Shown piece after piece: positions 52,804-64,000 of a DNA stretch of 64,000 nucleotides. Position numbers and translations under genes: made by a program. Within the stretch, counting starts at the first letter, position 1. Each line of letters begins with the position of its first letter. A model generated the notes under the pieces. It worked only from the letters and a program-made list of their open reading frames with translations, searched no databases and was not told the DNA's origin. The stretch spans positions 1-64,000 of the forward strand of contig OZ251230.1 in assembly GCA_965240325.2 (NCBI GenBank), written 5' to 3'. This stretch comes from Rebecca billardiae RCC1528 (lineage: Eukaryota > Protista > Haptophyta).

Positions 52804-53210
52804 GCACCTCGTGCACGTGGGGCGGGTGGTGGCGGGGAGCCGCGGCCTTTGAAGGTGCTCGTGTGCGTCTGTGCGAGACCTGCACTATCCGTTTTACCTG
52901 TAGCGGGTAACGCGGTAAGTTCATCGAGCCTGCCTAGGAGTCGATGAATATGTGTATTCAGCCTGAGAGTTTCGGCAGCACTCAAAGTGCTGGGCGGGAA
53001 CGATTATTGAACGCCCACCGACTGTTTACGGGTGAACATATGCGCCGCTTCCCAGCCCTGCGATTAATACAAACCTGGGTATGAGGGTATCTTGTCGGCG
53101 GCACAAAAATGGATCAAAAGGTCACCTGCCGGGGCCAAAGGACGAAACGGCCGCCGCTCGTACGAAATGGCGGCCGTCCACCAACCGCCGGGCTCCCAAA
53201 GGTGAGCGTG

Positions 53211-56180
53211 ATGGGCGTGGGCTGCCTGCTGTGCGCGCCGCGCGCCGGCGTGCGCCGCGACTCGGACGCGGCCGACGCGCACGAGCGGCTCTCGCGCGAG
53301 GACACGGCGCGGAGCGACGCCATCGCCGCCGCGCTCGCGCACGCCGAGCCGATGCCGGTCGTGCAGCTAGACTCGTGGCTCGCCGCCCTCGCGCGCGACG
53401 ACGGCGACGTCGCGCGCGCCGCGGGCGGCGACGAGCTCGCGGGCGAGGTCTCGGCGGCGGCGCGCGCGGCGCACGCGTCCTGGCAGCGCGCGGGCTTCTT
53501 CCTCGAGCTGCCCGGCCGCGCTCAGCCCGAGGCGGCGCGCGCCTCGCACGCCGGCGGCGCGGCGGACGCCGCCGTCGCGGCGGCGGACGCGGACCGGCTC
53601 GACGAGCTGCTCGCGGAGCACGCGCGGGACGAGCGGGTGTGGGTCGAGCTCGCCAGCGCCCGCGCGCCGCGCTCCCTCGGCCCGCCCTCGCCCGCGGCTG
53701 CGCTGGGCGCGCTGCTGCCGCTCGCGCAGGCGCCGCTCGACCTCGCGGTGGCGGCAGCGCACGCACGCGCGGGCCGTGCCGAGCTCGCGGCGCTGACGGC
53801 GGCGGTGGTGGCGGCGGCGTACGCGCTCGCGTGGCTCGCGCTGTACACCGCCGCGCGCAGCTGGCACCTGGCGCGCGAAGCGCCGCGCGACGTCTTCGCG
53901 CCGGGGCGCGCGCGCGCGCGCCTCGCGCGCTGCGGCGGAGGCGGCGGCGTGGCCGCGTGCGCTCGCTCGCCGCTGCTCGCCGTCGGCGTGTGGCTCGGGC
54001 CGCTGGGCCCGCTGCTCGTGCTCGACCCGCTCCTCGCGCTCGGCGCGGCGCGCGGCATGACGCCCGCCGCCCTCGCGCGCACGCCCACGCCGCCGGCGCA
54101 GCACGCGGCGGCGGCGCGCGCGCCGCGCGCGCGCGTGTGGCGCGGCTGGTTTGCGCGCGGCGCGGCCGCCGCGGCGGAGACGAGCGCCGTGCTCGGCGAG
54201 TACGCGGTGCTTCGCGCGGGCGTGCGCGCGTGGGCGCACGCGCTGCCGCAGGCGCTCGTGCACGCGTACGCGCTGCTCGCGCTCGCGCCCGCCGCGCGCG
54301 CCTCGCCTCTGCTGCCGTGCGCGCTCGGCTGCGCCGCCGCCGCCGCGGGCTTCGGGCTCTGGGAGCTGGGCGCGGCGGCGGGCGCGGCGCGGCTCGGGCT
54401 GGGCGAGTACGGGCGGCGCGTGCTGCTGTGCGCGGGCTGCCCGCTCGCGCCCGCCGCCACGGCCGGCTGGCTCCGCCAGCTCGGCGCGGCGCGCGCGCGC
54501 GCCGGCCGCACGCTGAGCGGCGCGCCCGGCGGCTCTGAGCTGCTGGCCGGCTGCGCGCTGCTGCACGCGCGCGCGCGGCCGTGCGCGCTCGTGGCGGTGG
54601 CGGTGGCGGCCGCGCGCGGCGTGGACGCGGACGGCGCGGCGGTGCTCGCGCGCGCGGCGCTGTGCGCCGACGGCACCGCTGTGCGCGCGCTCCGCCTCGC
54701 CGACTGCGCGCTCGGCGACGCCGGCGGCATCGCGCTCGCGGCCGCGGTGCGCGCGTCGCCCGCGCCGCGCGCGCCGCCGCTGCACTCGCTCGAGCTCGAG
54801 GGGTGCGAGCTGGCCGACGCGGCGGCGGTGGGGCTCGCGCGCGCGCTGCCGGCGCGGGGCGCGGAGCTCGAGCGGCTCGTCCTCAGCGCGAACCGCCTCA
54901 CCGCGCGCGGCGCCGCCGCGCTCGCGGGCGGGCTGCGCCTCTGCGCGCGGCTGCGCGCGCTCGAGCTGCGAGCCAACCCTCTGGGCGACGGCGGCGCGCA
55001 CGCGCTGGCCGGCGCGCTCGGCGGGATGGGGGCGCTGCGCCGGCTCGGGCTGGGCGAGGCGGGGCTCGGGCCGGAGGGCGCGATCGCCCTCGTCCGCGCC
55101 GCCTCCGCGCCCGGCGCCTCCGGCCGCGCCGCGCTGCGCTGGCTCGACCTCGGGCGCAACGACGTGGGCGATGGCGGCGCGCTCGCGCTCGCGCGCGCGC
55201 TCGGTGGCGGCGCGCACGCGGCCGGCGGCGGCGCGGAGGCGGAGGAGTGGGGCGAGGCGGCGGAGGTGCGCCCGGGCGGGCTGCGCCACTGCCTGCGCCA
55301 CCTCTTCCTCGACCACAACCGCACCCTCGGCGACGAGGGCGGCGTGGCGCTCGCGCGCGCGCTCGCGCCCGCCGCCGACGCGCATGCCGCGCGCGGCGCG
55401 CTCGAGTCGCTCGACCTCTCCGCCACGGGCGTGGGCGACAGGAGCGCGGCCGCGCTCGGCGCGAGCGCGGTCGGGCTCGTCGAGCTGTGGCTCTCCTCGA
55501 GCGCCATCACCGACCGCGGCGCCGCCGCCCTCTGCCCGCTGCTCGGCGGCGCGTGCGCGCTGCGCTCACTGGCGCTCTCCGCGTGCGCGCTCGGCGATGC
55601 GGGCGCGGCCGCGCTCGGCGGCGCGCTCGGCGGCGGCGAGTGCGCGCTGCGCGAGCTCCGGCTCTCGAGCAACGCGATCGGCGCGCTCGGCGCGGTGGCG
55701 CTCGCGCACGGCGCGTGCAGCGCGCCCGCGCTGCGCGCGCTCGCGCTCGGCGCCAACCGCATCGACGACGGCGCGTGCGCCGCGCTGTGCGCCGCCGCCG
55801 CCACCGCGCCCGCGCTGCGCAGCCTCGGGCTGGCGGCCAACCCGCTGTCCGAGGCGGCGGAGGGCGCGCTGCGGGGCGCGTGGGCGAGCCGGCGCGCGCG
55901 CCGCGCGGCCGACGGGCTGCAGCTCGGCGACGGCTCGCTCGCGCCGGGCTCGCCCGTGCTCGCGCGCGTGCGGCGCATCCGCCGCTCGCACAGCGCCAGC
56001 CTCAGCCTCAGCCTCAGCCTCAGCCCGTCCCTCAGCCCGTCGGTCGCACACAGCGCCGCGCACAGCGTGAGCGTGCTCAGCGACGGCGCGGCCGGCTCCG
56101 AGCCGGCGGCCGCGCTCGCGCCCGCCGCGGGCGGGGGCACGTCTCGGCCTCACCAGCAGAAGGGCGCGCAGGCCGTCTAG
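53211..56180 (+). CDS. Membrane protein (possibly XK-related) with C-terminal RI-class leucine-rich repeats
   Basis: Hydrophobic N-terminal half including ALPQALVHAY; about 12 LxxLxLxxNxLGDxGAxAL repeats. Confidence 0.75.
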   Translation: MGVGCLLCAPRAGVRRDSDAADAHERLSREDTARSDAIAAALAHAEPMPVVQLDSWLAALARDDGDVARAAGGDELAGEVSAAARAAHASWQRAGFFLELPGRAQPEAARASHAGGAADAAVAAADADRLDELLAEHARDERVWVELASARAPRSLGPPSPAAALGALLPLAQAPLDLAVAAAHARAGRAELAALTAAVVAAAYALAWLALYTAARSWHLAREAPRDVFAPGRARARLARCGGGGGVAACARSPLLAVGVWLGPLGPLLVLDPLLALGAARGMTPAALARTPTPPAQHAAAARAPRARVWRGWFARGAAAAAETSAVLGEYAVLRAGVRAWAHALPQALVHAYALLALAPAARASPLLPCALGCAAAAAGFGLWELGAAAGAARLGLGEYGRRVLLCAGCPLAPAATAGWLRQLGAARARAGRTLSGAPGGSELLAGCALLHARARPCALVAVAVAAARGVDADGAAVLARAALCADGTAVRALRLADCALGDAGGIALAAAVRASPAPRAPPLHSLELEGCELADAAAVGLARALPARGAELERLVLSANRLTARGAAALAGGLRLCARLRALELRANPLGDGGAHALAGALGGMGALRRLGLGEAGLGPEGAIALVRAASAPGASGRAALRWLDLGRNDVGDGGALALARALGGGAHAAGGGAEAEEWGEAAEVRPGGLRHCLRHLFLDHNRTLGDEGGVALARALAPAADAHAARGALESLDLSATGVGDRSAAALGASAVGLVELWLSSSAITDRGAAALCPLLGGACALRSLALSACALGDAGAAALGGALGGGECALRELRLSSNAIGALGAVALAHGACSAPALRALALGANRIDDGACAALCAAAATAPALRSLGLAANPLSEAAEGALRGAWASRRARRAADGLQLGDGSLAPGSPVLARVRRIRRSHSASLSLSLSLSPSLSPSVAHSAAHSVSVLSDGAAGSEPAAALAPAAGGGTSRPHQQKGAQAV

Positions 56181-56835: not shown

Positions 56836-58753
56836 TCAGCCGTACACGCCCGTGCAGTTGGTGCGCAGCGCGTACCCGACGAGGCCGAGCATCGGCAGCA
56901 GCGGCAGGTGCACGCTGATGTGCCCGTCCCACCAGGACGGGTCGTCCATTCCGGCGAAGAAGTTCCAGCTAAGCAGTGCGAAGGCGGCGCGCGCGCGCGC
57001 GGGCGGGCGGGCGGACGGGCCCGTGGCTCGGCTCAGGCGCGGCCGGCGCGGCGCGCGGCCGGCGCGGCGGGCTTTCGCACGCGGCGCGCACCGGTGCTTG
57101 TTCCACGGCGTGGACGCATCGCCCCCCGGCGGCGCGCCGCGCAGCTCGCCGACCTTCATGCCCTCGAGCTTGGCGTTGGCCGCCTTCGAGTGGCCGATCG
57201 CGTTGTAGTCGTCAGTGCAGTCGCGCCCGGCCGCGCCCAGCACCGCCTCCCGCCCGCCCGGGTGCTCGTCCAGGTAACGGCTCGCGTCGTACACCACGCC
57301 GCCTGCGCGGAGGGGGAGCGCACGCGGGGCCAGGGCCGCGCGTGGGCCTCGCGCGCGGGCGCCGCGCGTGGCCCGGCCCGCTCCCACTCCGCGTGTCGCG
57401 CCCCGCCCGCCGGCCGCCGGCCGGCTTGGGCGCGCGTACCGATGGCGAGCCAGACGCCGTCCTTCTCGTTGGCGTGCCGCGCGAGCTCGCCCAGCCCGAT
57501 CCGCGAGGCGTCGGTGTCCGCCGCCTCGGCCTCGGCGGCGCGGCGCGCGGCCTCGTCGGCGAGCGCCTGGTTCGCCGTGATCTGCCGCCAGTCCAGCGCG
57601 GTCGCCTGCTCGCCCACGTACTGCGCGCGCCCCTCGTGCCTCGTGCCAAACGCGGCGTCCCACAGCCCGCCGATCGCCGAGAAGGAGAAGTTGCACGACT
57701 TGTGGCCCTCGTGGTGCCAGTCGTGGTGGTGCGGCATCTGCGAGAAGGGGAAGAAGCGCTGCGCGTTGTGCGCCAGGTTCGCCGCGCACGACACGCCCGA
57801 GTGCTTCTCGAGCGACTCCATGATCCGCACGAACACGTGCGCGTAGAAGGTCGCGTGGTCGAGCGGCACCAGCACCTGCGCGGCCGACTGGCCGACCATG
57901 CCGGCGAGCAGGTTGTCGAGCGGGTGCGACTGGTAGGTGACGCGCGAGAGCGGCGTGGTCGGGTGGTGGTGGATGCCGTGCAGGTACCTCCACGCCCACT
58001 CGCCCACGTGCCCCGCGCGGTGCACCCAGTACATTGCGTAGCTCATCGCGTACTGGTGGCCCACGAAGCGCAGCGCGCGCTGCAGCGGCGGATGCGTCAC
58101 GTGCCGCGCGGGGAAGTAGCCGGGCACGAGGTAGTACCAGCCGAGCAGCCACGCCACGTCGAGCAGGATCGTGCCGCCTGCGACCGGCGCGGCGCGCGCG
58201 CGGGCGCGGGCGCGGCGGCGGCGGCGTCAGCGCGCGTCCGCGCGCGTGACCGCGCGCCGGTGCGCGCGCGCTCACGGTCGTTCCACTCCTGCGCGGCGAG
58301 GAACTTGATCTCGCGGCCGACGAGGTCGGTCTTGGTGTTGAGCGCGTGCGCCTTGGTCGGCTGCGTGCGGTACTCCGGGAACTTGAAGAAGACGCTCTCG
58401 AGGAAGAGCGTGTACGCGCGGATGAAGACGGACTGGCCCACCAGCCAGCAGCCCACCTCGAGCAGCGACTGCGAGTTGGGCGCGGAGAGGTGCGGGTAGC
58501 AGTACCCGACGGCGACGAGGCCGAGGCGGAGGCCCCACTCGAGCGCGGTGGTCCAGCCCGAGCCGCCGAAGAGCAGCCCCGAGAAGTGCTGGCCCTGCTC
58601 GTACTGCTGCTCCGCGAGCGTCGGCGGCGGCGGCTGCACGGCCGAGCGCGACTTCTTGAGCGAGACGATGCGCTCGACGTGGCCCGAGAGCATGGACGAG
58701 TCGCGGCGCATGACCATGGGCGTCGAGCCCTTGCGCGAGAGCGGCTTGATCAT
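56836..58753 (-). CDS. Fatty-acid hydroxylase/sterol desaturase-superfamily enzyme with C-terminal cytochrome b5 (introns 58178-58275, 57303-57439, 56969-57091)
   Basis: His boxes YWVHRAGH, LHGIHHH, EKHSG, HHHDWHH; b5 motif WLAI/GGVVYDAS.YL.EHPGG...AGRDCT..Y..IGHS; hydrophobic tail. Confidence 0.88.
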
Positions 58754-59552
58754 CGCGCCGGCTCCCCGCGCCGCGTGCGCGCGCTCGGGAGGGCCCGCGG
58801 ACGGTGCGGCGCTCGCGGCCCGAGACCGCCGATGCGTCGCCGAAGGGCGTTGGCCGGAGCGCAAAGAAAAGCCGTGAGGGCCGGGTTTGTCGTCTTTTCG
58901 CGGAAAGATTGCGCTCCGCACTCTGGAAAGCCTGGTTTATAGTGGTTTGCAGGCGGGTTTCGCGCGACTTTTCGCTGAACTGATGCTAAGTAGGAGCCTG
59001 GTAAGTTCCCACTATGTAACCTACCGACGTGGACGAAGCCGTCTATTTCACTTTTAACCCGCAGAGGAATCAGTAGGAACTGTGCTGCCCCGTTGACATA
59101 CGAAAGTGCGCGCGATGCGTTTTGCGACGTCAAGTTGGGTCCCTCCAGAGCTTTTTAGGAACGAACCATAGAAGGCATGCGTGGAGAAAAGGGGCGACGG
59201 GGTCGTGATTCGAGCGAGGCCAGTCGAGCGGTGCGCTTTCTGAAGTTCTCCCGGCGATTAAACCACGCCTGCGCCCGGCGGCGGCGGCGGCGGCGGCGGC
59301 TGGCAATCTGCCAAGCGCCCCTGGCCTCGCGTCGCCGCGCGAGCGCACGGCGCCAGGCGTCGGATAGGCAGATCTCCCTCTCGCTCGGGTCCGGCCTTTC
59401 AACCAGCTTACTTGTACCTTCGCGACGCGCTCTTTTTACCCGCTCGGGCTCGGCGTCGTCGAGATCATCAGGACAGCCGCCGGAGCAGCCAGCCGAGCCG
59501 TGCATCGTCGGCAACTCGCGCCTTCCACACCTCGCCGAGCACACAGAGAGAG

Positions 59553-61668
59553 ATGGCGCCGCCAACGGTCCCCGCGGAGATGGACAACAAGGACTTCCTC
59601 CACCAGGTGCGCGCCCACGCGCCGTGCCGCGAGGGCTGCGTGCCCGCGCGCGCCCGCTTGCGCGCGCGGCGCGGGCGCGCGCGTCCGCGCTGGGCGGCGT
59701 CTGCGGCGCCGACCGGAAGGCGAGCTCGCGTGCCCGCGCGCCCGCGCGCCCGCACCGCGCGCGCCCGTGCGCGCACAGACGGCGAAGAACCACAAGCTCG
59801 AGTCGAAGGAGCACCCGAACGGCATCAAGGAGCTCTCGATGCACATCGGCGAGCACACGTACCCGGTCTACCTCGGGTACAACAAGCTGCCCGAGCTGAT
59901 CGCCGAGCTGAAGAAGCTCGACCTGGACAAGGTGCGCGCGCACGGGGCGGGCGGGGGCCGGGGATGCGGGCGGCGGGGTGCGACGGCTGGCTGGGCGAGG
60001 GCCGTGGGCCGCCGTGGACGCGAAGGGCGAGCGCGGCGGGCTTGGCGCCGCGCGCGCTCCGCCGCGCGCGGCCCGGCGTGCGCGGATCGGCCGGCGCCGC
60101 GGCGCACGTGGCGTGGCGTGTGCGCACGCGCGCCTCGCTGCGCTCTCACAGCCGCCCCCGCCCGCCCTTGCCCCCCGCAGGTCTTCCTCGGCTACGACGA
60201 GATGACGGCGAAGCACTGCGGCCCCAAGCTCGAGGCGGAGCTGACCAAGGCGGGCGTGCCGTTCCAGCGCTGCGTGATGGGGCTGACGGAGGCGGCCAAG
60301 ACGGTGTCCACGCTCGACATGATCCTCGAGACGTTCCTCAAGGGCGGCGGCTCGCGCAAGACCATCATGATGCCCGTCGGCGGCGGCATCGTCTCGAACA
60401 CCTTCGGCCTCGCCGCCGGGCTGCTCTTCCGCGGCATCCGGCTCGTGCAGGTGCCCACCTCGTTCCTCAACGCGCACGACGCGGCGGCGTCGTCGCAGAA
60501 GCAGGCGGTGAACCACGCGGGGTACAAGAACATCGTCGGGCTGTACCACAGCCCGACGATGGTCCTCGTCGACACCTCGTTCTACGCCTCGCTCGGCATG
60601 GTGCAGATGAAGGCGGGGCTGGGCGAGCTGACCAAGAACGCCGCGCTGTTCGGAGGCGTGCACTACGAGCTGATGAAGAAGACCACCAAGGTCAAGGGCT
60701 GGAAGCTGAGCGGGGAGGACCTGGTCGAGGCGACGTTCACGGGGATCGGCGCGAAGGACATGCTGCTCAAGCTCGACCCGCGCGAGAAGCACATCGCGCT
60801 CCTCTTCGAGTACGGCCACACCATCGGCCACGCGCTCGAGCTGACCGAGGGCACGATCACCTCGCACGGCGAGGGCGTGGCCATCGGCATGCTCGGCGCC
60901 TCCTACATCTCGCACAAGATGGGGCTGATGAGCGCAAAGGACCGCGAGGAGCACGACCAACTGATCGAGTGGCTCGACCCGGAAATCTTCCTGTGCGCGC
61001 GCGCGCCGCCCGGCCCGCGCGCGCCGCCGCCCCGCGCCGCTCACGCGCGCGCCGCCGCCCGGCCCGCCGCCGCCGCCTGGCCCGCCGCCGCTGCCGCCGC
61101 CGCCGCAGCCCGGACCGCGACCTGGAGGCGGAGGTGCTCGACAAGGTGCTGCACGACAACAAGCGCGGGTACATCCCGGAGAAGGAGGGCCACGCGCCGT
61201 TCATCCTCAACAAGCGCATCGGGGAGATGCACTACCCCAACATCTACTACCTCGAGTGAGTCGCGCGCACACCGCGCACACCGCGCACACCGCGCACACC
61301 GCGCGCACCGCGCGCGCATGGGCACACGACGAGCGCGGGCGCGCGACCGCCGCGCGCGCTCACGGGCCGCCCCCGCGCCGCGCCTGCCGCCGCCGCCGCG
61401 CCGCAGGTACGTGCCCGTGCCCATCGTCAAGGAGGCGATCAAGTACGTGCTCGAGCGGATGCGCAAGCGCGGCTACTCCGGCGGCAACGCGTCGGGCGAG
61501 GACGGCACCGTCAAGCGCGACACGCGCCGCGCCGCCAAGCCGCTCAAGCGCCACCCGTCCTCGTTCGTGTACGGTGACGACTTGCCCGCGGCCAAGGTGG
61601 CCAAGGCGCTGGAGAAGGGCATCACCAAGGAGAAGTCCATCAAGATGGAGGCGCCCAAGCACTTCTAA
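59553..61668 (+). CDS. 2-deoxy-scyllo-inosose synthase-like sugar-phosphate cyclase (exons 59553-59606, 59779-59931, 60181-60992, 61109-61255, 61407-61668)
   Basis: GGGIVSN..G.AAGLLFRGIRLVQVPTSFL, KQAVN...KNIVG.Y, KAGLGELTKN, DPREK...FEYGHTIGHALEL, HGEGVAIGM, HDNKRGY; four GT-AG introns give a continuous frame. Confidence 0.85.
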
Positions 61669-62159
61669 GCGGCAGCCGCCTGAAAATGTCTAATGACGAG
61701 ATGAGGCTGCACGATGGCGTTGAGGCCGCGGGCGCCGCCAGCCGTCGTGAGTGCCGCTCGACAGCCGGAGAGCCGCTGCCGCTGATCATCACGGTAGTCC
61801 GGGCGGTATCATGATACAGCAGCAGCGTCACAGCGCAGCAGCAGCATATCATATTATATTAGTATCGTCGATCGCGTCGGCAGTGACTGTACGTGAGCGA
61901 GTGACTGAGTTACTAATACGAGTAGTCGTACTGATATAGCGGCGGTTATTAGTCGTGCGTAGTCGCGCGTCTGAGCGCCGGGCGCGCGCCACGCAGCGCT
62001 GATGCTTACACGCGTGTGATCTGTGACTGTGAGCATCCGCGAGTACGCGCTGTACGCGCGCGATTCTGCGGACGCACCTACTCGGTCACGATCAGATGGT
62101 CCCGCGCAGGTGCCGCCCGGCAGCTCCCACTCGAGCGGCACGCCACCGAGCTGCTGTGC

Positions 62160-64000
62160 TCACACCAGCATGCCCCCCTTGAGGCCGCCGCCGTGTGCAG
62201 CGCCGCCGAGCTCGCGGTGATGCCCGCCATGGTGCCCGCCATGGTGCCCGCCACCGCTGCGCGGCTTCTTGCCCGGCAGCGCGAGCGAGCCGCGCCGCGT
62301 CGGCGCCGGCGTGCGCGCCTTGCGGAGGGGCGTGGCGGCGCCGGTCGCGGCGCCCGTCCTCGCCGCCCGCCCGGGCCGCGCCGAGCTCACGTCCTCGACC
62401 GCCACCTCTCCGCTGCCCGCCGCGCTCTCGGAGGCGTCCGCGTACGCCCACAGCGCCTCCGCCCCGCGCCCGGCCTTGGGCACGGCGCCCAGCACGCAGC
62501 ACGCTAGCAGCAGGGCGGCTGCGCACGCGGGGTGGGGGCACGCGCGCGGGGCGGAGGGCGGCGCGTGAGGGCGCGGGCCGCCGCAGCACGCGCGGCGCCG
62601 CGCCGCGCAACGCTCGCGGCGCGGCGCGCACACCTCCGCACGCGAGGTGCACCCACGCCGGCGCGCGCGCGGGCAGCACGGCCCCCTGCGCGCCCAGCGC
62701 ACCGCCCAGCGCCACGCGCCCGGCCGCGCAGCACAGCCGCAGCGCGCGGCCGACGGGGGCGCGCACAAACGCCAGCAGGCCTGCGCGCGGCGCGCGGCAC
62801 GCAGCGGTGGCGCGGTGGGGCGGCGGTGGCAGCGGCGCGCGGCGTGAGGCGCGAGCAGCACGCACGGCGCGCGAGCGCGCGCGTGCGCGGGCCGTGGGGT
62901 GCGCGCACACACCCGCGTGTGCCGCCTCCAGCGCGAGCAGCAGCAGCGACACAGACCCCAGGCACACGCCGAGCAGAAGAGCCACGCACGCCGAGGGCGG
63001 CGCGGCGGGCGCGCCGACGAGCGTCTTGAGAGCGGCGGCCAGGCCTGCGCGCACACGCGCACACACACGCGCGCACACACGCGCGCACACGCACACGCAC
63101 ACGCACACGCACACGCGCACGCGCACGCGCACGCGCACGCGCGCGCGCACACAGCGCCGTCCGCTCAGTGGCCGCGGCGCGCGCGCGCGCGCGGCGCGCG
63201 CGCGGCGCTGCGCCGCGCCCCGGCGCGCGTCGCGTGCGCGCACAGAGCAGCGCGACAACGGCCGGCCAGTGCGCGTAGCGCCACGCGAGCGCGCGCGCGC
63301 CCGACCTCCGCAGCGCGTGCCTGCGCCCGCCGGCGCCGCTGCCGGCCACAGCGTAGCCGCAGCCGAGGGCGAGCACTGCGCACAGCGCGCACGCTAAGCC
63401 GAGCGCGGCGGCAGCGGCCGGGGAGAGGGCGGGCGGGGCGGCGGAGGCGGCGGCGTGGTGCAGGGCCGCGGGCTCGGCGCGCTCGAGCAGCGCGCCCAGC
63501 GCCGCGCCGCCGCCGCCCAGCCCGCCGCCCGCCACGCTGCCGCCGGCCGCGAGCGCGGCGCCGCGCGCGGCCGCGGCCGCCGCCAGCCGCCGCCCCGCGC
63601 CCGCGGCGGCCGCGAGGGCGGCCGTGGCCGGCTCGGCCGGGAGCGCGGCGGCCGCGGGGCCTGGCGCGTGCGCAGGCGACGGCGGCGCGGCGGCAGGCGA
63701 CGGCGGCGCGGCGGCAGGCGACGGCGGCGGAGTGCTCGTCGCGTCGCTCGGCGCGGCCGCGGCGGCGGGCGCGCGCTCGACGGCCGAGCGCGCGCCCGCC
63801 GCCGCGCTAAGCGCGCTCGGCGCGGGCTCGCCCACGGCGGGGCCGTGGCCGGCGGGCGAGACCGCGGTGACGATGCTGAGCACGCACGTGCCCAGCGCGA
63901 GCATCAGCAGCTCGCCGAAGCGCCGCGCGCTGAACTCGGCGCCGGAGGCGGGAGCGGTGGAGGCGGGAGCGCGTGTGCCGGGCGCGGGCGCCGCCCCCGC
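62160..64000 (-). CDS. Hypothetical multi-pass membrane protein, 5'-partial, exon structure uncertain
   Basis: Hydrophobic segments (LMLALGTCVLSIV, ALGLACALCAVLALGC, VALLLGVCLGSVSLLLLAL, LLLACCVLGAV) separated by intron-like (GC)n/(GCACAC)n tracts. Confidence 0.45.

Follow-up and report, generated by a model that had tools for sequence, protein, structure and literature searches.

In bacteria, 2-deoxy-scyllo-inosose (DOI) synthase (DOIS) catalyzes the step that commits biosynthesis to the 2-deoxystreptamine aminoglycosides. It is represented by BtrC of Niallia (Bacillus) circulans (EC: 4.2.3.124; PDB 2D2X/2GRU) and by the NeoC/KanC-type enzymes of actinomycetes. To our knowledge, a DOIS-type cyclase has so far not been described from any eukaryote. 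Another member of the superfamily is 3-dehydroquinate synthase (DHQS), found as AroB or as the DHQS domain of AROM. Eukaryotes have also taken over bacterial-type sugar-phosphate cyclases to make protective small molecules. The vertebrate and green-algal EEVS, which belong to the sedoheptulose-7-phosphate (S7P) cyclases, make gadusol or MAA (PMC4426668, PMC7826186), and EboD/DEIS is found in eustigmatophyte plastids (PMC5133447, PMC12904256).

The gene considered here is located on the plus strand at 59553–61668 of a 64-kb window, by which the whole stretch of DNA analysed is meant. The first-pass annotation assigned its product to the DOIS type rather than to the DHQS type. This is supported by the protein sequence and its signature residues, by the predicted structure and by the phylogeny, which also set it apart from the S7P-cyclase type. 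The predicted protein shares with BtrC and the NeoC/KanC-type DOIS the fold (TM 0.91), the motifs GGGxxxN, KQAVN, ELxKN, EYGHTIGHA and DNKRGY, the glutamate corresponding to Glu243, the absence of the carboxylate-binding Arg and a common tree clade. Unlike them, it is eukaryotic, is encoded with introns and carries a disordered tail of ~65 aa; its identity to them is ~31–33%, its activity is predicted from sequence, and its gene is not accompanied by a nearby aminotransferase, radical-SAM dehydrogenase, deacetylase or glycosyltransferase. AroB and the AROM domain belong to the same superfamily and resemble it in fold, in the chemistry of NAD and metal, and in the five-step type of mechanism. 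The locus represents a conserved, intron-bearing eukaryotic DOIS-type subfamily, expressed in relatives, of an enzyme described until now only from antibiotic-making bacteria.

Gene structure and genomic neighbourhood

The gene starts with ATG at 59553 and ends with TAA at 61668. Its five exons, joined by GT..AG splicing, form a CDS of 1428 nt, which encodes 475 aa with no internal stops. Exon 1 (59553–59606, +; 54 nt, 18 codons) contains the start codon and was placed by the splice model, with cDNA L005 aligned at 59553–59602. Intron 1 (59607–59778, +; 172 nt, GT..AG, 87% GC) is skipped in cDNA contigs L016 and L005. Exon 2 (59779–59931, +; 153 nt) encodes N-terminal strands of the Rossmann-like domain and is followed by intron 2 (59932–60180, +; 249 nt, GT..AG, 86% GC), both being based on the splice model and cDNA alignment. 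Exon 3 (60181–60992, +; 812 nt) encodes the cyclase core, recognized by Pfam DHQ_synthase and DHQS_C, by the match to BtrC (E = 3e-42) and by the residue table. It includes the NAD motif GGGIVSN, K176 of KQAVN, the metal ligands E218, H282 and H298 and the DOIS-specific E279. Intron 3 (60993–61108, +; 116 nt, GT..AG, 95% GC) occupies a position at which Diacronema lutheri has no intron. Exon 4 (61109–61255, +; 147 nt) carries the HDNKRGY motif (N357, R359, G360). Intron 4 (61256–61406, +; 151 nt, GTGAGT..AG, 85% GC) contains a tandem CGCACACCG-type repeat. Exon 5 (61407–61668, +; 262 nt with the stop codon) encodes the final helix of the cyclase fold and then the C-terminal tail. GC content amounts to 60–66% in the exons, 85–95% in the introns and 74.7% in the whole window.

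Contigs of cDNA from two pavlovophyte relatives (L016; L005, from D. lutheri) align with the window in five blocks equal to the five exons, and proteins derived from the relatives' transcripts are colinear over all exon joints. The four GT..AG introns and the match of the exons to spliced cDNA bear out the five-exon gene with host-style introns described in the first pass. The exact gene sequence was absent from the sequencing runs of RNA (best word share 0.11); its expression is therefore deduced from relatives' transcripts only. The N-terminus is hydrophilic and belongs to the fold, and a presequence appears to be absent according to the sequence and the model of ortholog P0001. The C-terminal tail is pavlovophyte-specific and predicted to be disordered (pLDDT < 50 at residues 416–476 of the P0001 model); no Pfam family matched it.

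The enzymes of 2-deoxystreptamine synthesis taken from L006, L007 and L008 (DegT-type aminotransferase, dehydrogenase/radical-SAM, deacetylase, glycosyltransferases) gave no tblastn match in the 64-kb window at E ≤ 0.01. This agrees with the earlier remark that the window shows no aminotransferase or glycosyltransferase, which argues against an aminoglycoside cluster. In D. lutheri, whose counterpart of the cyclase is KFE25_003690, the neighbouring genes are unrelated as well. Since clustering is not obligatory for eukaryotic genes, these results exclude the cluster but not the pathway. An IolE-like, IolG-like or SDR partner was not found in the 64-kb window. A functional link to the head-to-head cytochrome-b5 gene (ATG at 58752, minus strand) was rejected because the upstream gene of D. 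lutheri carries a Ydr279_N domain, not cytochrome-b5, and synteny is thus absent.

Phylogeny, bacterial relatives and proposed pathway

A phylogeny against other sugar-phosphate cyclases had been proposed in the first-pass annotation. In the tree built here, which does not include DEIS/EboD, EVS, DDGS and aminoDHQS (DDGS was compared via PDB scores only), grouping with AroB or S7P cyclases was not seen. The protein is nested within a DOIS clade of 62 rows (support 100/99), apart from DHQS and S7P cyclases. The same clade holds DOIS from canonical 2-DOS-type clusters, in which a DegT aminotransferase, a radical SAM enzyme, a PIG-L deacetylase and glycosyltransferases are also encoded. The eukaryote-dominated subclade to which the protein belongs nests among bacteria. 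The tree is compatible with the probable horizontal acquisition suggested earlier, and a bacterial origin fits it.

The closest non-algal relatives are DOIS-like cyclases of Ca. Kentrum, Moorea and metagenomes (P0030, P0034–P0036), which form the sister clade (100/99). Their identity is 47–51% over exon 3 and, against ortholog P0001, 45–48% over the whole protein. They have identical signature residues and, like the algal gene, are located outside aminoglycoside clusters. They differ in being bacterial, intronless and arranged in operon-like pairs or clusters, adjoining either IolG-like dehydrogenases and an SDR or an IolI-like TIM barrel (PF01261). For one member of the sister clade, the cluster also includes a type I PKS and a P450. 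The cyanobacterium Oscillatoriales USR001 encodes a more distant DOIS-like cyclase (32% identity), again next to a protein of this TIM-barrel family. The IolG-like dehydrogenases, the SDR and the TIM barrels are cyclitol-modifying enzymes of the inosose/inositol type, not aminotransferases or other aminoglycoside enzymes. In Ca. Kentrum and Oscillatoriales the IolI-like TIM barrel is encoded 3' of the cyclase; its co-transfer found no support, as its 120 best relatives include no eukaryotes. The sister clade possibly contains choanoflagellate members.

Matches were obtained in haptophytes and one raphidophyte, the named taxa including Fibrocapsa and Chrysotila. Every pavlovophyte data set among the matches has the gene, namely the D. 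lutheri genome and transcriptome and three MMETSP-type transcriptomes. The family is also recurrent in marine metatranscriptomes, where it is found on mRNA-length contigs. No named sequence of Emiliania or of the model diatoms is present among the close matches, and the Atlas search yielded just the general family.

It is rather probable that the protein is a DOIS-type enzyme acting in a non-aminoglycoside deoxy-cyclitol pathway of a pavlovophyte in whose genome the gene has long been resident. Its substrate, product, cellular location and metabolic fate we infer by analogy. The enzyme would bind a hexose 6-phosphate, glucose-6-phosphate being the likeliest by comparison with BtrC, and the bound NAD+ would oxidize C4. 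Elimination of phosphate could be aided by the DOIS-specific glutamate (E279; BtrC E243), after which C4 would be re-reduced. Ring opening and intramolecular aldol closure of the carbocycle would then produce 2-deoxy-scyllo-inosose, which in the alga could enter the non-aminoglycoside deoxy-cyclitol pathway.

1,4/2,5-Cyclohexanetetrol is a major compatible solute of pavlovophytes, the classic group for this compound, and would be the most attractive end product in these algae. It was found in the 1960s, and we know of no gene assigned to its biosynthesis so far. In the literature searched, no DOIS homologue is tied to algae or to cyclohexanetetrol. Synthesis of the tetrol from DOI could be realized via IolE-like beta-dehydration to 4,5-dihydroxycyclohexane-1,2-dione and two subsequent ketoreductions; this link is chemically plausible. 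That the family is the missing entry enzyme of such a route, from glucose-6-phosphate through DOI, dehydration and both reductions, is proposed tentatively. No better candidate is at present available for the first step of algal deoxy-cyclitol osmolyte synthesis.

A true DOIS could also serve another product, be it a quercitol-type pentol, an aminocyclitol, or a lipid, polyketide or signal that bears a cyclitol. The tetrol would in that case come from another route or from a DOIS-like paralog. The PKS and P450 genes around the bacterial sister-clade member agree with such a fate, as does the occurrence of the family in taxa without known cyclohexanetetrol; we know of no report of the compound in Fibrocapsa or Chrysotila. 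Cyclohexanetetrol has been reported in some diatoms (PMC5334607) and, putatively, in Isochrysis (PMC7998644), although the close matches include no named sequence of Emiliania or of the model diatoms; this counts against the proposed link to the tetrol. Against a different product stand the presence of the gene in all pavlovophyte data sets matched and the carbon skeleton and trans-4,5-diol of DOI, which suit the tetrol. Fusions of the cyclase with an AKR were likewise not found, either in a length-extended word search or among the 150 best relatives. We therefore regard this alternative as rather unlikely.

If the family does provide the entry enzyme for cyclohexanetetrol, a horizontally acquired bacterial antibiotic-pathway enzyme underlies an abundant marine osmolyte. 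This bears on the old question of how algae synthesize deoxy-cyclitol osmolytes such as cyclohexanetetrol, and the gene would supply a marker for tracing deoxy-cyclitols in ocean transcriptomes. DOI is a sought-after intermediate of green chemistry, so a eukaryotic source enzyme is of some applied interest.

Active site, predicted structure and substrate

Pfam detects DHQ_synthase (1e-24, N-terminal) and DHQS_C (7e-20), i.e., the two domains of the DHQS fold. The metal triad E218/H282/H298 is invariant, and the Gly-rich NAD+ loop (G136–G138) is present, as in the superfamily as a whole. Comparison with solved structures gives the highest bit score for BtrC (148), followed by the best DHQS (107), ValA (EEVS, 83) and DDGS (73). 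The AlphaFold model of ortholog P0001 (pLDDT 86.9) has BtrC chains as its top four PDB matches (TM by target 0.90–0.92, identity 31–33%). DHQS, EEVS and DDGS rank behind them, and all 50 PDB matches listed belong to the sugar phosphate cyclase superfamily.

All 13 BtrC active-site positions checked, which we take to be the metal ligands and the sugar and phosphate contacts, are conserved in 21 of 21 eukaryotic sequences. Among them is E279, the equivalent of BtrC Glu243, presumably the DOIS-specific catalytic glutamate; this position is occupied by N in 7/7 AroB and by D in the S7P cyclase. In a column scan of our own alignment with a conservation cut-off of 90%, the protein matches 12 of the 16 DOIS-only signature columns and 2 of the 17 AroB-only ones.

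An enzyme of the same fold and chemistry could use another substrate or have another stereochemistry, e.g., cyclize mannose-6-phosphate to an epimeric deoxy-inosose. Hexose-phosphate cyclases of differing specificity are known, such as the recently described DEIS/EboD, which acts on mannose-6-phosphate (PMC12904256). The branches that separate the algal clade from characterised, assayed DOIS are long (~2.3 substitutions per site), and identity is 30–34% to named DOIS and about 31–33% to BtrC; a shift of substrate or stereochemistry is thus possible. Of the 16 DOIS-only columns, four are not shared: R is replaced by K129, H by Q159 and V by A172, and L150 is kept in 19/21 sequences, just below the 90% cut-off. 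However, all the BtrC positions checked are identical, and EboD is reported to form a separate superfamily clade beside the S7P cyclases (PMC5133447), whereas the algal protein nests in DOIS. Altered specificity is accordingly considered unlikely, slightly more so than a different product.

The S7P cyclases are distinguished by their own residues. At BtrC positions 243, 187, 225 and 250 the S7P cyclase compared has D, M, M and P, whereas E279, N222, K261 and H286 are present here. EEVS and EboD belong to other clades with other fingerprints, ValA and DDGS score far under BtrC, and EboD is set apart by its published description.

The protein could also be the 3-dehydroquinate synthase of the algal shikimate pathway, in line with its public annotation as '3-dehydroquinate synthase domain-containing protein'. 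Pfam and NCBIfam likewise call it DHQ synthase or aroB-like, under the aroB cut-off: TIGR01357 gives 177.7 bits for exon 3 alone (270/475 aa), the cut-off of 305 being meant for the whole protein. The motifs contradict this annotation, and here the first-pass reading holds in every instance. GGGIVSN is found in place of GGGxxGD (in alignment with AroB, S7P cyclase and named DOIS), and LLFRGI in place of the (S/T)Y(M/Q)RG of two of three AroBs, the third having IVRRG. SQKQAVN replaces GGK(T/V)(A/G)(V/I)N, FEYGHTIGHA replaces LNLGHTFGHA, HDNKRGY replaces DKK, and ELxKN is present as ELTKN. At the positions equivalent to BtrC 239, 243 and 187, AroB carries R, N and Y/H/E, respectively; the R, found in 7/7 sequences, corresponds to A275 of the algal protein. 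None of the AroB features GGGxxGD, GGKT, R with N, and DKK is retained. The Arg, Asn and DKK lysine that are invariant in the AroBs compared are replaced by A275, E279 and N357; in DHQS of A. nidulans we equate them with Arg264, which binds the carboxylate, Asn268 and Lys356. Branches with 99/88 and 100/99 support also separate the protein from AroB. A role as DHQS is therefore very improbable.

Residence in the pavlovophyte genome

The gene is a nuclear, intron-bearing pavlovophyte gene that has long been resident in the genome. The first pass had supposed a Pavlova/Diacronema-like host, and a pavlovophyte is indeed indicated, the closest relatives being D. lutheri and its allies by identity (88% over exon 3, 84% over the whole protein) and by the tree. 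The published GC content of the D. lutheri genome is 73.25% (PMC8379373), against 74.7% for the window. Although bacteria are its nearest non-eukaryotic relatives, a bacterial contaminant or a dead horizontally acquired relic, the least probable explanation by far, is refuted by the four spliceosomal GT..AG introns, two of them at positions common to D. lutheri (CDS nt 54 and nt 207), by a GC3 of 98.7%, which matches the GC-rich window, by the orthologs found as spliced transcripts, and by a dN/dS of 0.11–0.17, i.e., purifying selection.

Gene structure and residence in the nucleus

The cyclase gene, obtained by reading window 59000–62300 and splicing it by script, lies on the forward strand and comprises five exons (59553–59606, 59779–59931, 60181–60992, 61109–61255 and 61407–61668). 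The four introns (172, 249, 116 and 151 nt) all have GT..AG borders, and the spliced coding sequence of 1428 nt encodes 475 amino acids. Two mRNA-length contigs of relatives, L016 from a pavlovophyte transcriptome and the D. lutheri cDNA contig L005, whose product is identical to Diacronema lutheri KFE25_003690, break into five blocks, corresponding to the five exons, when aligned to the window. The transcript-derived proteins P0001–P0004 are colinear with the window protein across every exon joint. As judged from this agreement with transcripts and proteins of relatives, the gene model rests on more than splice consensus, and the intron-containing five-exon gene proposed by the first-pass annotation is borne out. 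No public sequencing run contained the exact gene sequence, so the evidence for transcription comes from relatives.

The GC content is 60–66% in the exons, 85–95% in the introns and 74.7% in the window. An uninterrupted 722-aa ORF (59500–61668, + strand) spans exons 1–3 and introns 1 and 2 and reaches the true stop codon in frame, because the GC-rich introns have no stop codon in that frame; such a read-through ORF is a trap for gene callers that rely on ORFs in this genome. A (GGC)8 microsatellite (59279–59302) precedes the start codon by about 250 bp, and intron 4 contains a tandem 9-bp CGCACACCG-type repeat (61262–61310).

By exon 3 identity, the closest proteins are pavlovophyte (P0001, 96%; D. 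lutheri, 88%), and the D. lutheri pair forms the sister group of the window protein in the tree (100/93). A Pavlova/Diacronema-type haptophyte host is thus supported at group level, but the species is distinct from D. lutheri NIVA-4/92, with whose cDNA exon 3 shares 83% nucleotide identity. The GC content of the D. lutheri genome is 73.25% (PMC8379373). The D. lutheri gene (L004 10001–13111) has five introns versus four in the window copy (59553–61668), and the two copies share only their first two intron positions (after nt 54 and nt 207 of the CDS). The common ancestor must therefore already have had introns in this gene, and the introns have since turned over between pavlovophytes. Pairwise dN/dS among three cyclase coding sequences is 0.11–0.17, and GC3 of the window cyclase is 98.7%. 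A bacterial contaminant or relic was rejected in view of the spliced introns, the shared intron positions, the transcripts of relatives and this dN/dS range. The cyclase gene is thus a functional nuclear gene of long residence.

Assignment to the DOIS type

Family profile searches were performed with exon 3 alone (270 aa). It matches Pfam DHQ_synthase and DHQS_C, and scores 177.7 bits against the NCBIfam aroB equivalog, below a cut-off of 305 defined for full-length proteins. The top solved structure by sequence is BtrC, the DOIS of Niallia circulans (E 3.3e-42, 148 bits), followed at lower scores by the best DHQS (107 bits), ValA EEVS (83) and Anabaena DDGS (73). The AlphaFold model of the pavlovophyte ortholog P0001, built from a 55-sequence alignment (mean pLDDT 86.9), has BtrC chains as its four best PDB matches (TM by target 0.90–0.92, 31–33% identity); DHQS (22–26% identity) comes next, then EEVS and DDGS.

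Thirteen active-site positions, numbered as in BtrC from the alignment to 2d2x_A, were tabulated over 60 aligned sequences. D135, K141, N151, E183, K186, N187, K225, E235, E243, H246, H250 and H262 are identical in 21/21 eukaryotic sequences, in six sister-clade sequences and in 13 named DOIS; all of these groups have G or A at position 239. In BtrC, E183, H246 and H262 are the metal ligands, and Glu243 acts in phosphate elimination. At the discriminating positions (BtrC numbering), AroB has R239, N243 and Y/H/E187, and the S7P cyclase has D243, M187, M225 and P250; Arg264, Asn268 and Lys356 are active-site residues of A. nidulans DHQS. In an unbiased column scan, 16 columns were DOIS-only (conservation of 92% or more among named DOIS, for a residue that no AroB has) and 17 were AroB-only (invariant in AroB, for a residue that no DOIS has). 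The eukaryotic clade keeps 12 of the former and has the AroB residue in only two of the latter.

All six motifs quoted earlier as DOIS-type rather than DHQS-type proved correct, and the DOIS-like identity drawn from them holds: BtrC ranks best by sequence and predicted structure, and the active site, column scan and tree agree. In silico, there is good support for a DOIS-type cyclase that descends from bacteria and has been domesticated in a pavlovophyte.

The enzyme is probably cytosolic, because the N-terminus is hydrophilic (highest 9-residue Kyte–Doolittle mean 0.32 in the first 45 aa) and folded into the domain in the P0001 model. The C-terminal 60–65 or so residues (P0001 416–476; within exon 5, window 61407–61668) are predicted to be disordered with one short helix. 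This pavlovophyte-specific tail matched no Pfam family; it carries the motif KPLKRHPSSF(V/I)Y, conserved in pavlovophytes and followed by GDDLP in the window protein and three of four orthologs.

Phylogeny and probable bacterial origin

The tree (IQ-TREE, LG+C20 PMSF, 68 rows) was rooted on three AroBs from shikimate operons. A 62-row DOIS clade (100/99) stands apart from AroB, a Streptomyces S7P cyclase and two DHQS-family proteins. It includes Burkholderia L007 and Sodalis L008, from canonical 2-deoxystreptamine-type clusters (DegT aminotransferase, radical SAM/SPASM, PIG-L deacetylase, glycosyltransferases), and Streptomyces and Paenibacillus proteins named DOIS by NCBI. The grouping with DOIS anticipated by the first-pass annotation was thus recovered with respect to AroB and one S7P cyclase; DDGS, EVS, aminoDHQS and EboD/DEIS lie outside the tree, a gap that the PDB rankings cover only partly.

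Within the DOIS clade, a 22-row clade (100/99) unites pavlovophytes, the raphidophyte Fibrocapsa japonica and many marine metatranscriptome contigs of mRNA length. One sequence cluster in this set includes an acantharian transcriptome member, and Chrysotila carterae, outside the tree's rows, has a homologue of the window cyclase. The sister of the 22-row clade (100/99) consists of Ca. Kentrum, Moorea, two metagenome proteins and two choanoflagellate transcriptome proteins, with weak internal grouping (82/48). Acquisition of the cyclase from bacteria is the simplest reading of this tree, whose root is set by the outgroup. The choanoflagellate proteins P0038 and P0039 (Salpingoeca helianthica and a second EukProt transcriptome) could represent a second eukaryotic acquisition or contamination by prey bacteria.

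Genomic context and proposed product

In the 64-kb window, tblastn (E ≤ 0.01) with the enzymes of bacterial 2-DOS clusters (aminotransferase, radical-SAM enzyme, deacetylase, glycosyltransferases) detected no homologue of any of them, in agreement with the earlier reading that aminotransferase and glycosyltransferase are lacking there, nor of the IolG-like, SDR and TIM-barrel neighbours of bacterial relatives. The neighbouring gene on the − strand (56836–58752) is arranged head to head with the cyclase, its ATG (58752) and that of the cyclase lying 800 bp apart. Its ORF 56836–58275 encodes a cytochrome-b5 domain close to the C-terminal end (Pfam 2.9e-14). A functional link was given no weight, because the upstream gene of D. 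lutheri differs (Ydr279_N domain) and the adjacency is not conserved. A 1023-aa ORF (53109–56180, + strand) has strong LRR_6 (RNI-like leucine-rich repeat) matches (1.7e-26).

Among bacterial relatives, the P0034 cyclase is flanked by a double IolG-like Gfo/Idh/MocA protein and an SDR, adjoined by a type I PKS and a P450. Metagenome locus L001 (1–13750) encodes a P450, a 2261-aa type I PKS, a double IolG-like Gfo/Idh/MocA protein, a DOIS-like cyclase, an SDR and an amidase; without an aminotransferase, it is a candidate cyclitol-polyketide pathway. In Ca. Kentrum (L018 159–2240), a PF01261 TIM-barrel gene, whose solved relatives include 3u0h and inosose isomerase IolI (1i60), directly follows the cyclase. 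Oscillatoriales USR001 (L020 5841–7870) has a member of the same family directly after a more distant DOIS-like cyclase, which is 32% identical to the D. lutheri protein; the TIM barrels of this organism and the gammaproteobacterium Ca. Kentrum are 75% identical. This two-gene module of DOIS-like cyclase and xylose-isomerase-like TIM barrel recurs in bacteria; a Na+/H+ exchanger gene lies just upstream of the USR001 pair. No aminotransferase occurs in the P0034, Ca. Kentrum or USR001 cyclase contexts. Since their neighbours are IolG-like, SDR or IolI-like, without aminotransferase, the bacterial relatives look like inosose-type cyclitol makers, whose product would be reduced, isomerised or dehydrated, not aminated. 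The 120 best relatives of the TIM barrel include no eukaryotic member, which gives no hint that a partner enzyme was transferred together with the cyclase. Within the 50%-identity library, DOIS-like domains are also fused (P0420, P0424, P0444, P0483, P0484, P0502, P0505, P0518, P0160) to NTP_transferase, APH/choline kinase, GT9, GT2 with radical SAM/SPASM, a periplasmic-binding domain, PAPS reductase with glutaredoxin, and RRM_2. The 150 best relatives of the cyclase included no fusion to an AKR.

By homology with BtrC, the cyclase would use NAD+ to oxidize C4 of glucose-6-phosphate, eliminate phosphate with assistance from a Glu and then reduce the intermediate again; the ring would open, and an aldol reaction would close the carbocycle of 2-deoxy-scyllo-inosose (DOI). 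Chemical reasoning favours the first-pass idea of a route to cyclohexanetetrol: IolE-type beta-dehydration of DOI could yield 4,5-dihydroxycyclohexane-1,2-dione, in which the methylenes are para to each other and DOI's trans-diol is kept. Reduction of both ketones would give the 1,2,4,5-tetrol skeleton, making the trans/trans arrangement of 1,4/2,5-cyclohexanetetrol accessible; direct reduction of DOI would lead to quercitols instead. DOIS activity of the window protein and a link to cyclohexanetetrol are plausible hypotheses.

The searchable literature yielded no paper connecting DOIS homologues with algae, or cyclohexanetetrol with any gene. In a 2026 review (PMC12904256), DOIS appears only in connection with aminoglycosides, and DEIS/EboD is the most recent addition to the cyclases. 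The D. lutheri ortholog is publicly annotated as 'hypothetical protein' or 'DHQS domain-containing protein'. Cyclohexanetetrol is present in Monochrysis/Pavlova lutheri. It is also reported from two diatoms, Chaetoceros muelleri and Nitzschia ovalis (cited in PMC5334607), and was putatively assigned by NMR in Isochrysis galbana (PMC7998644).
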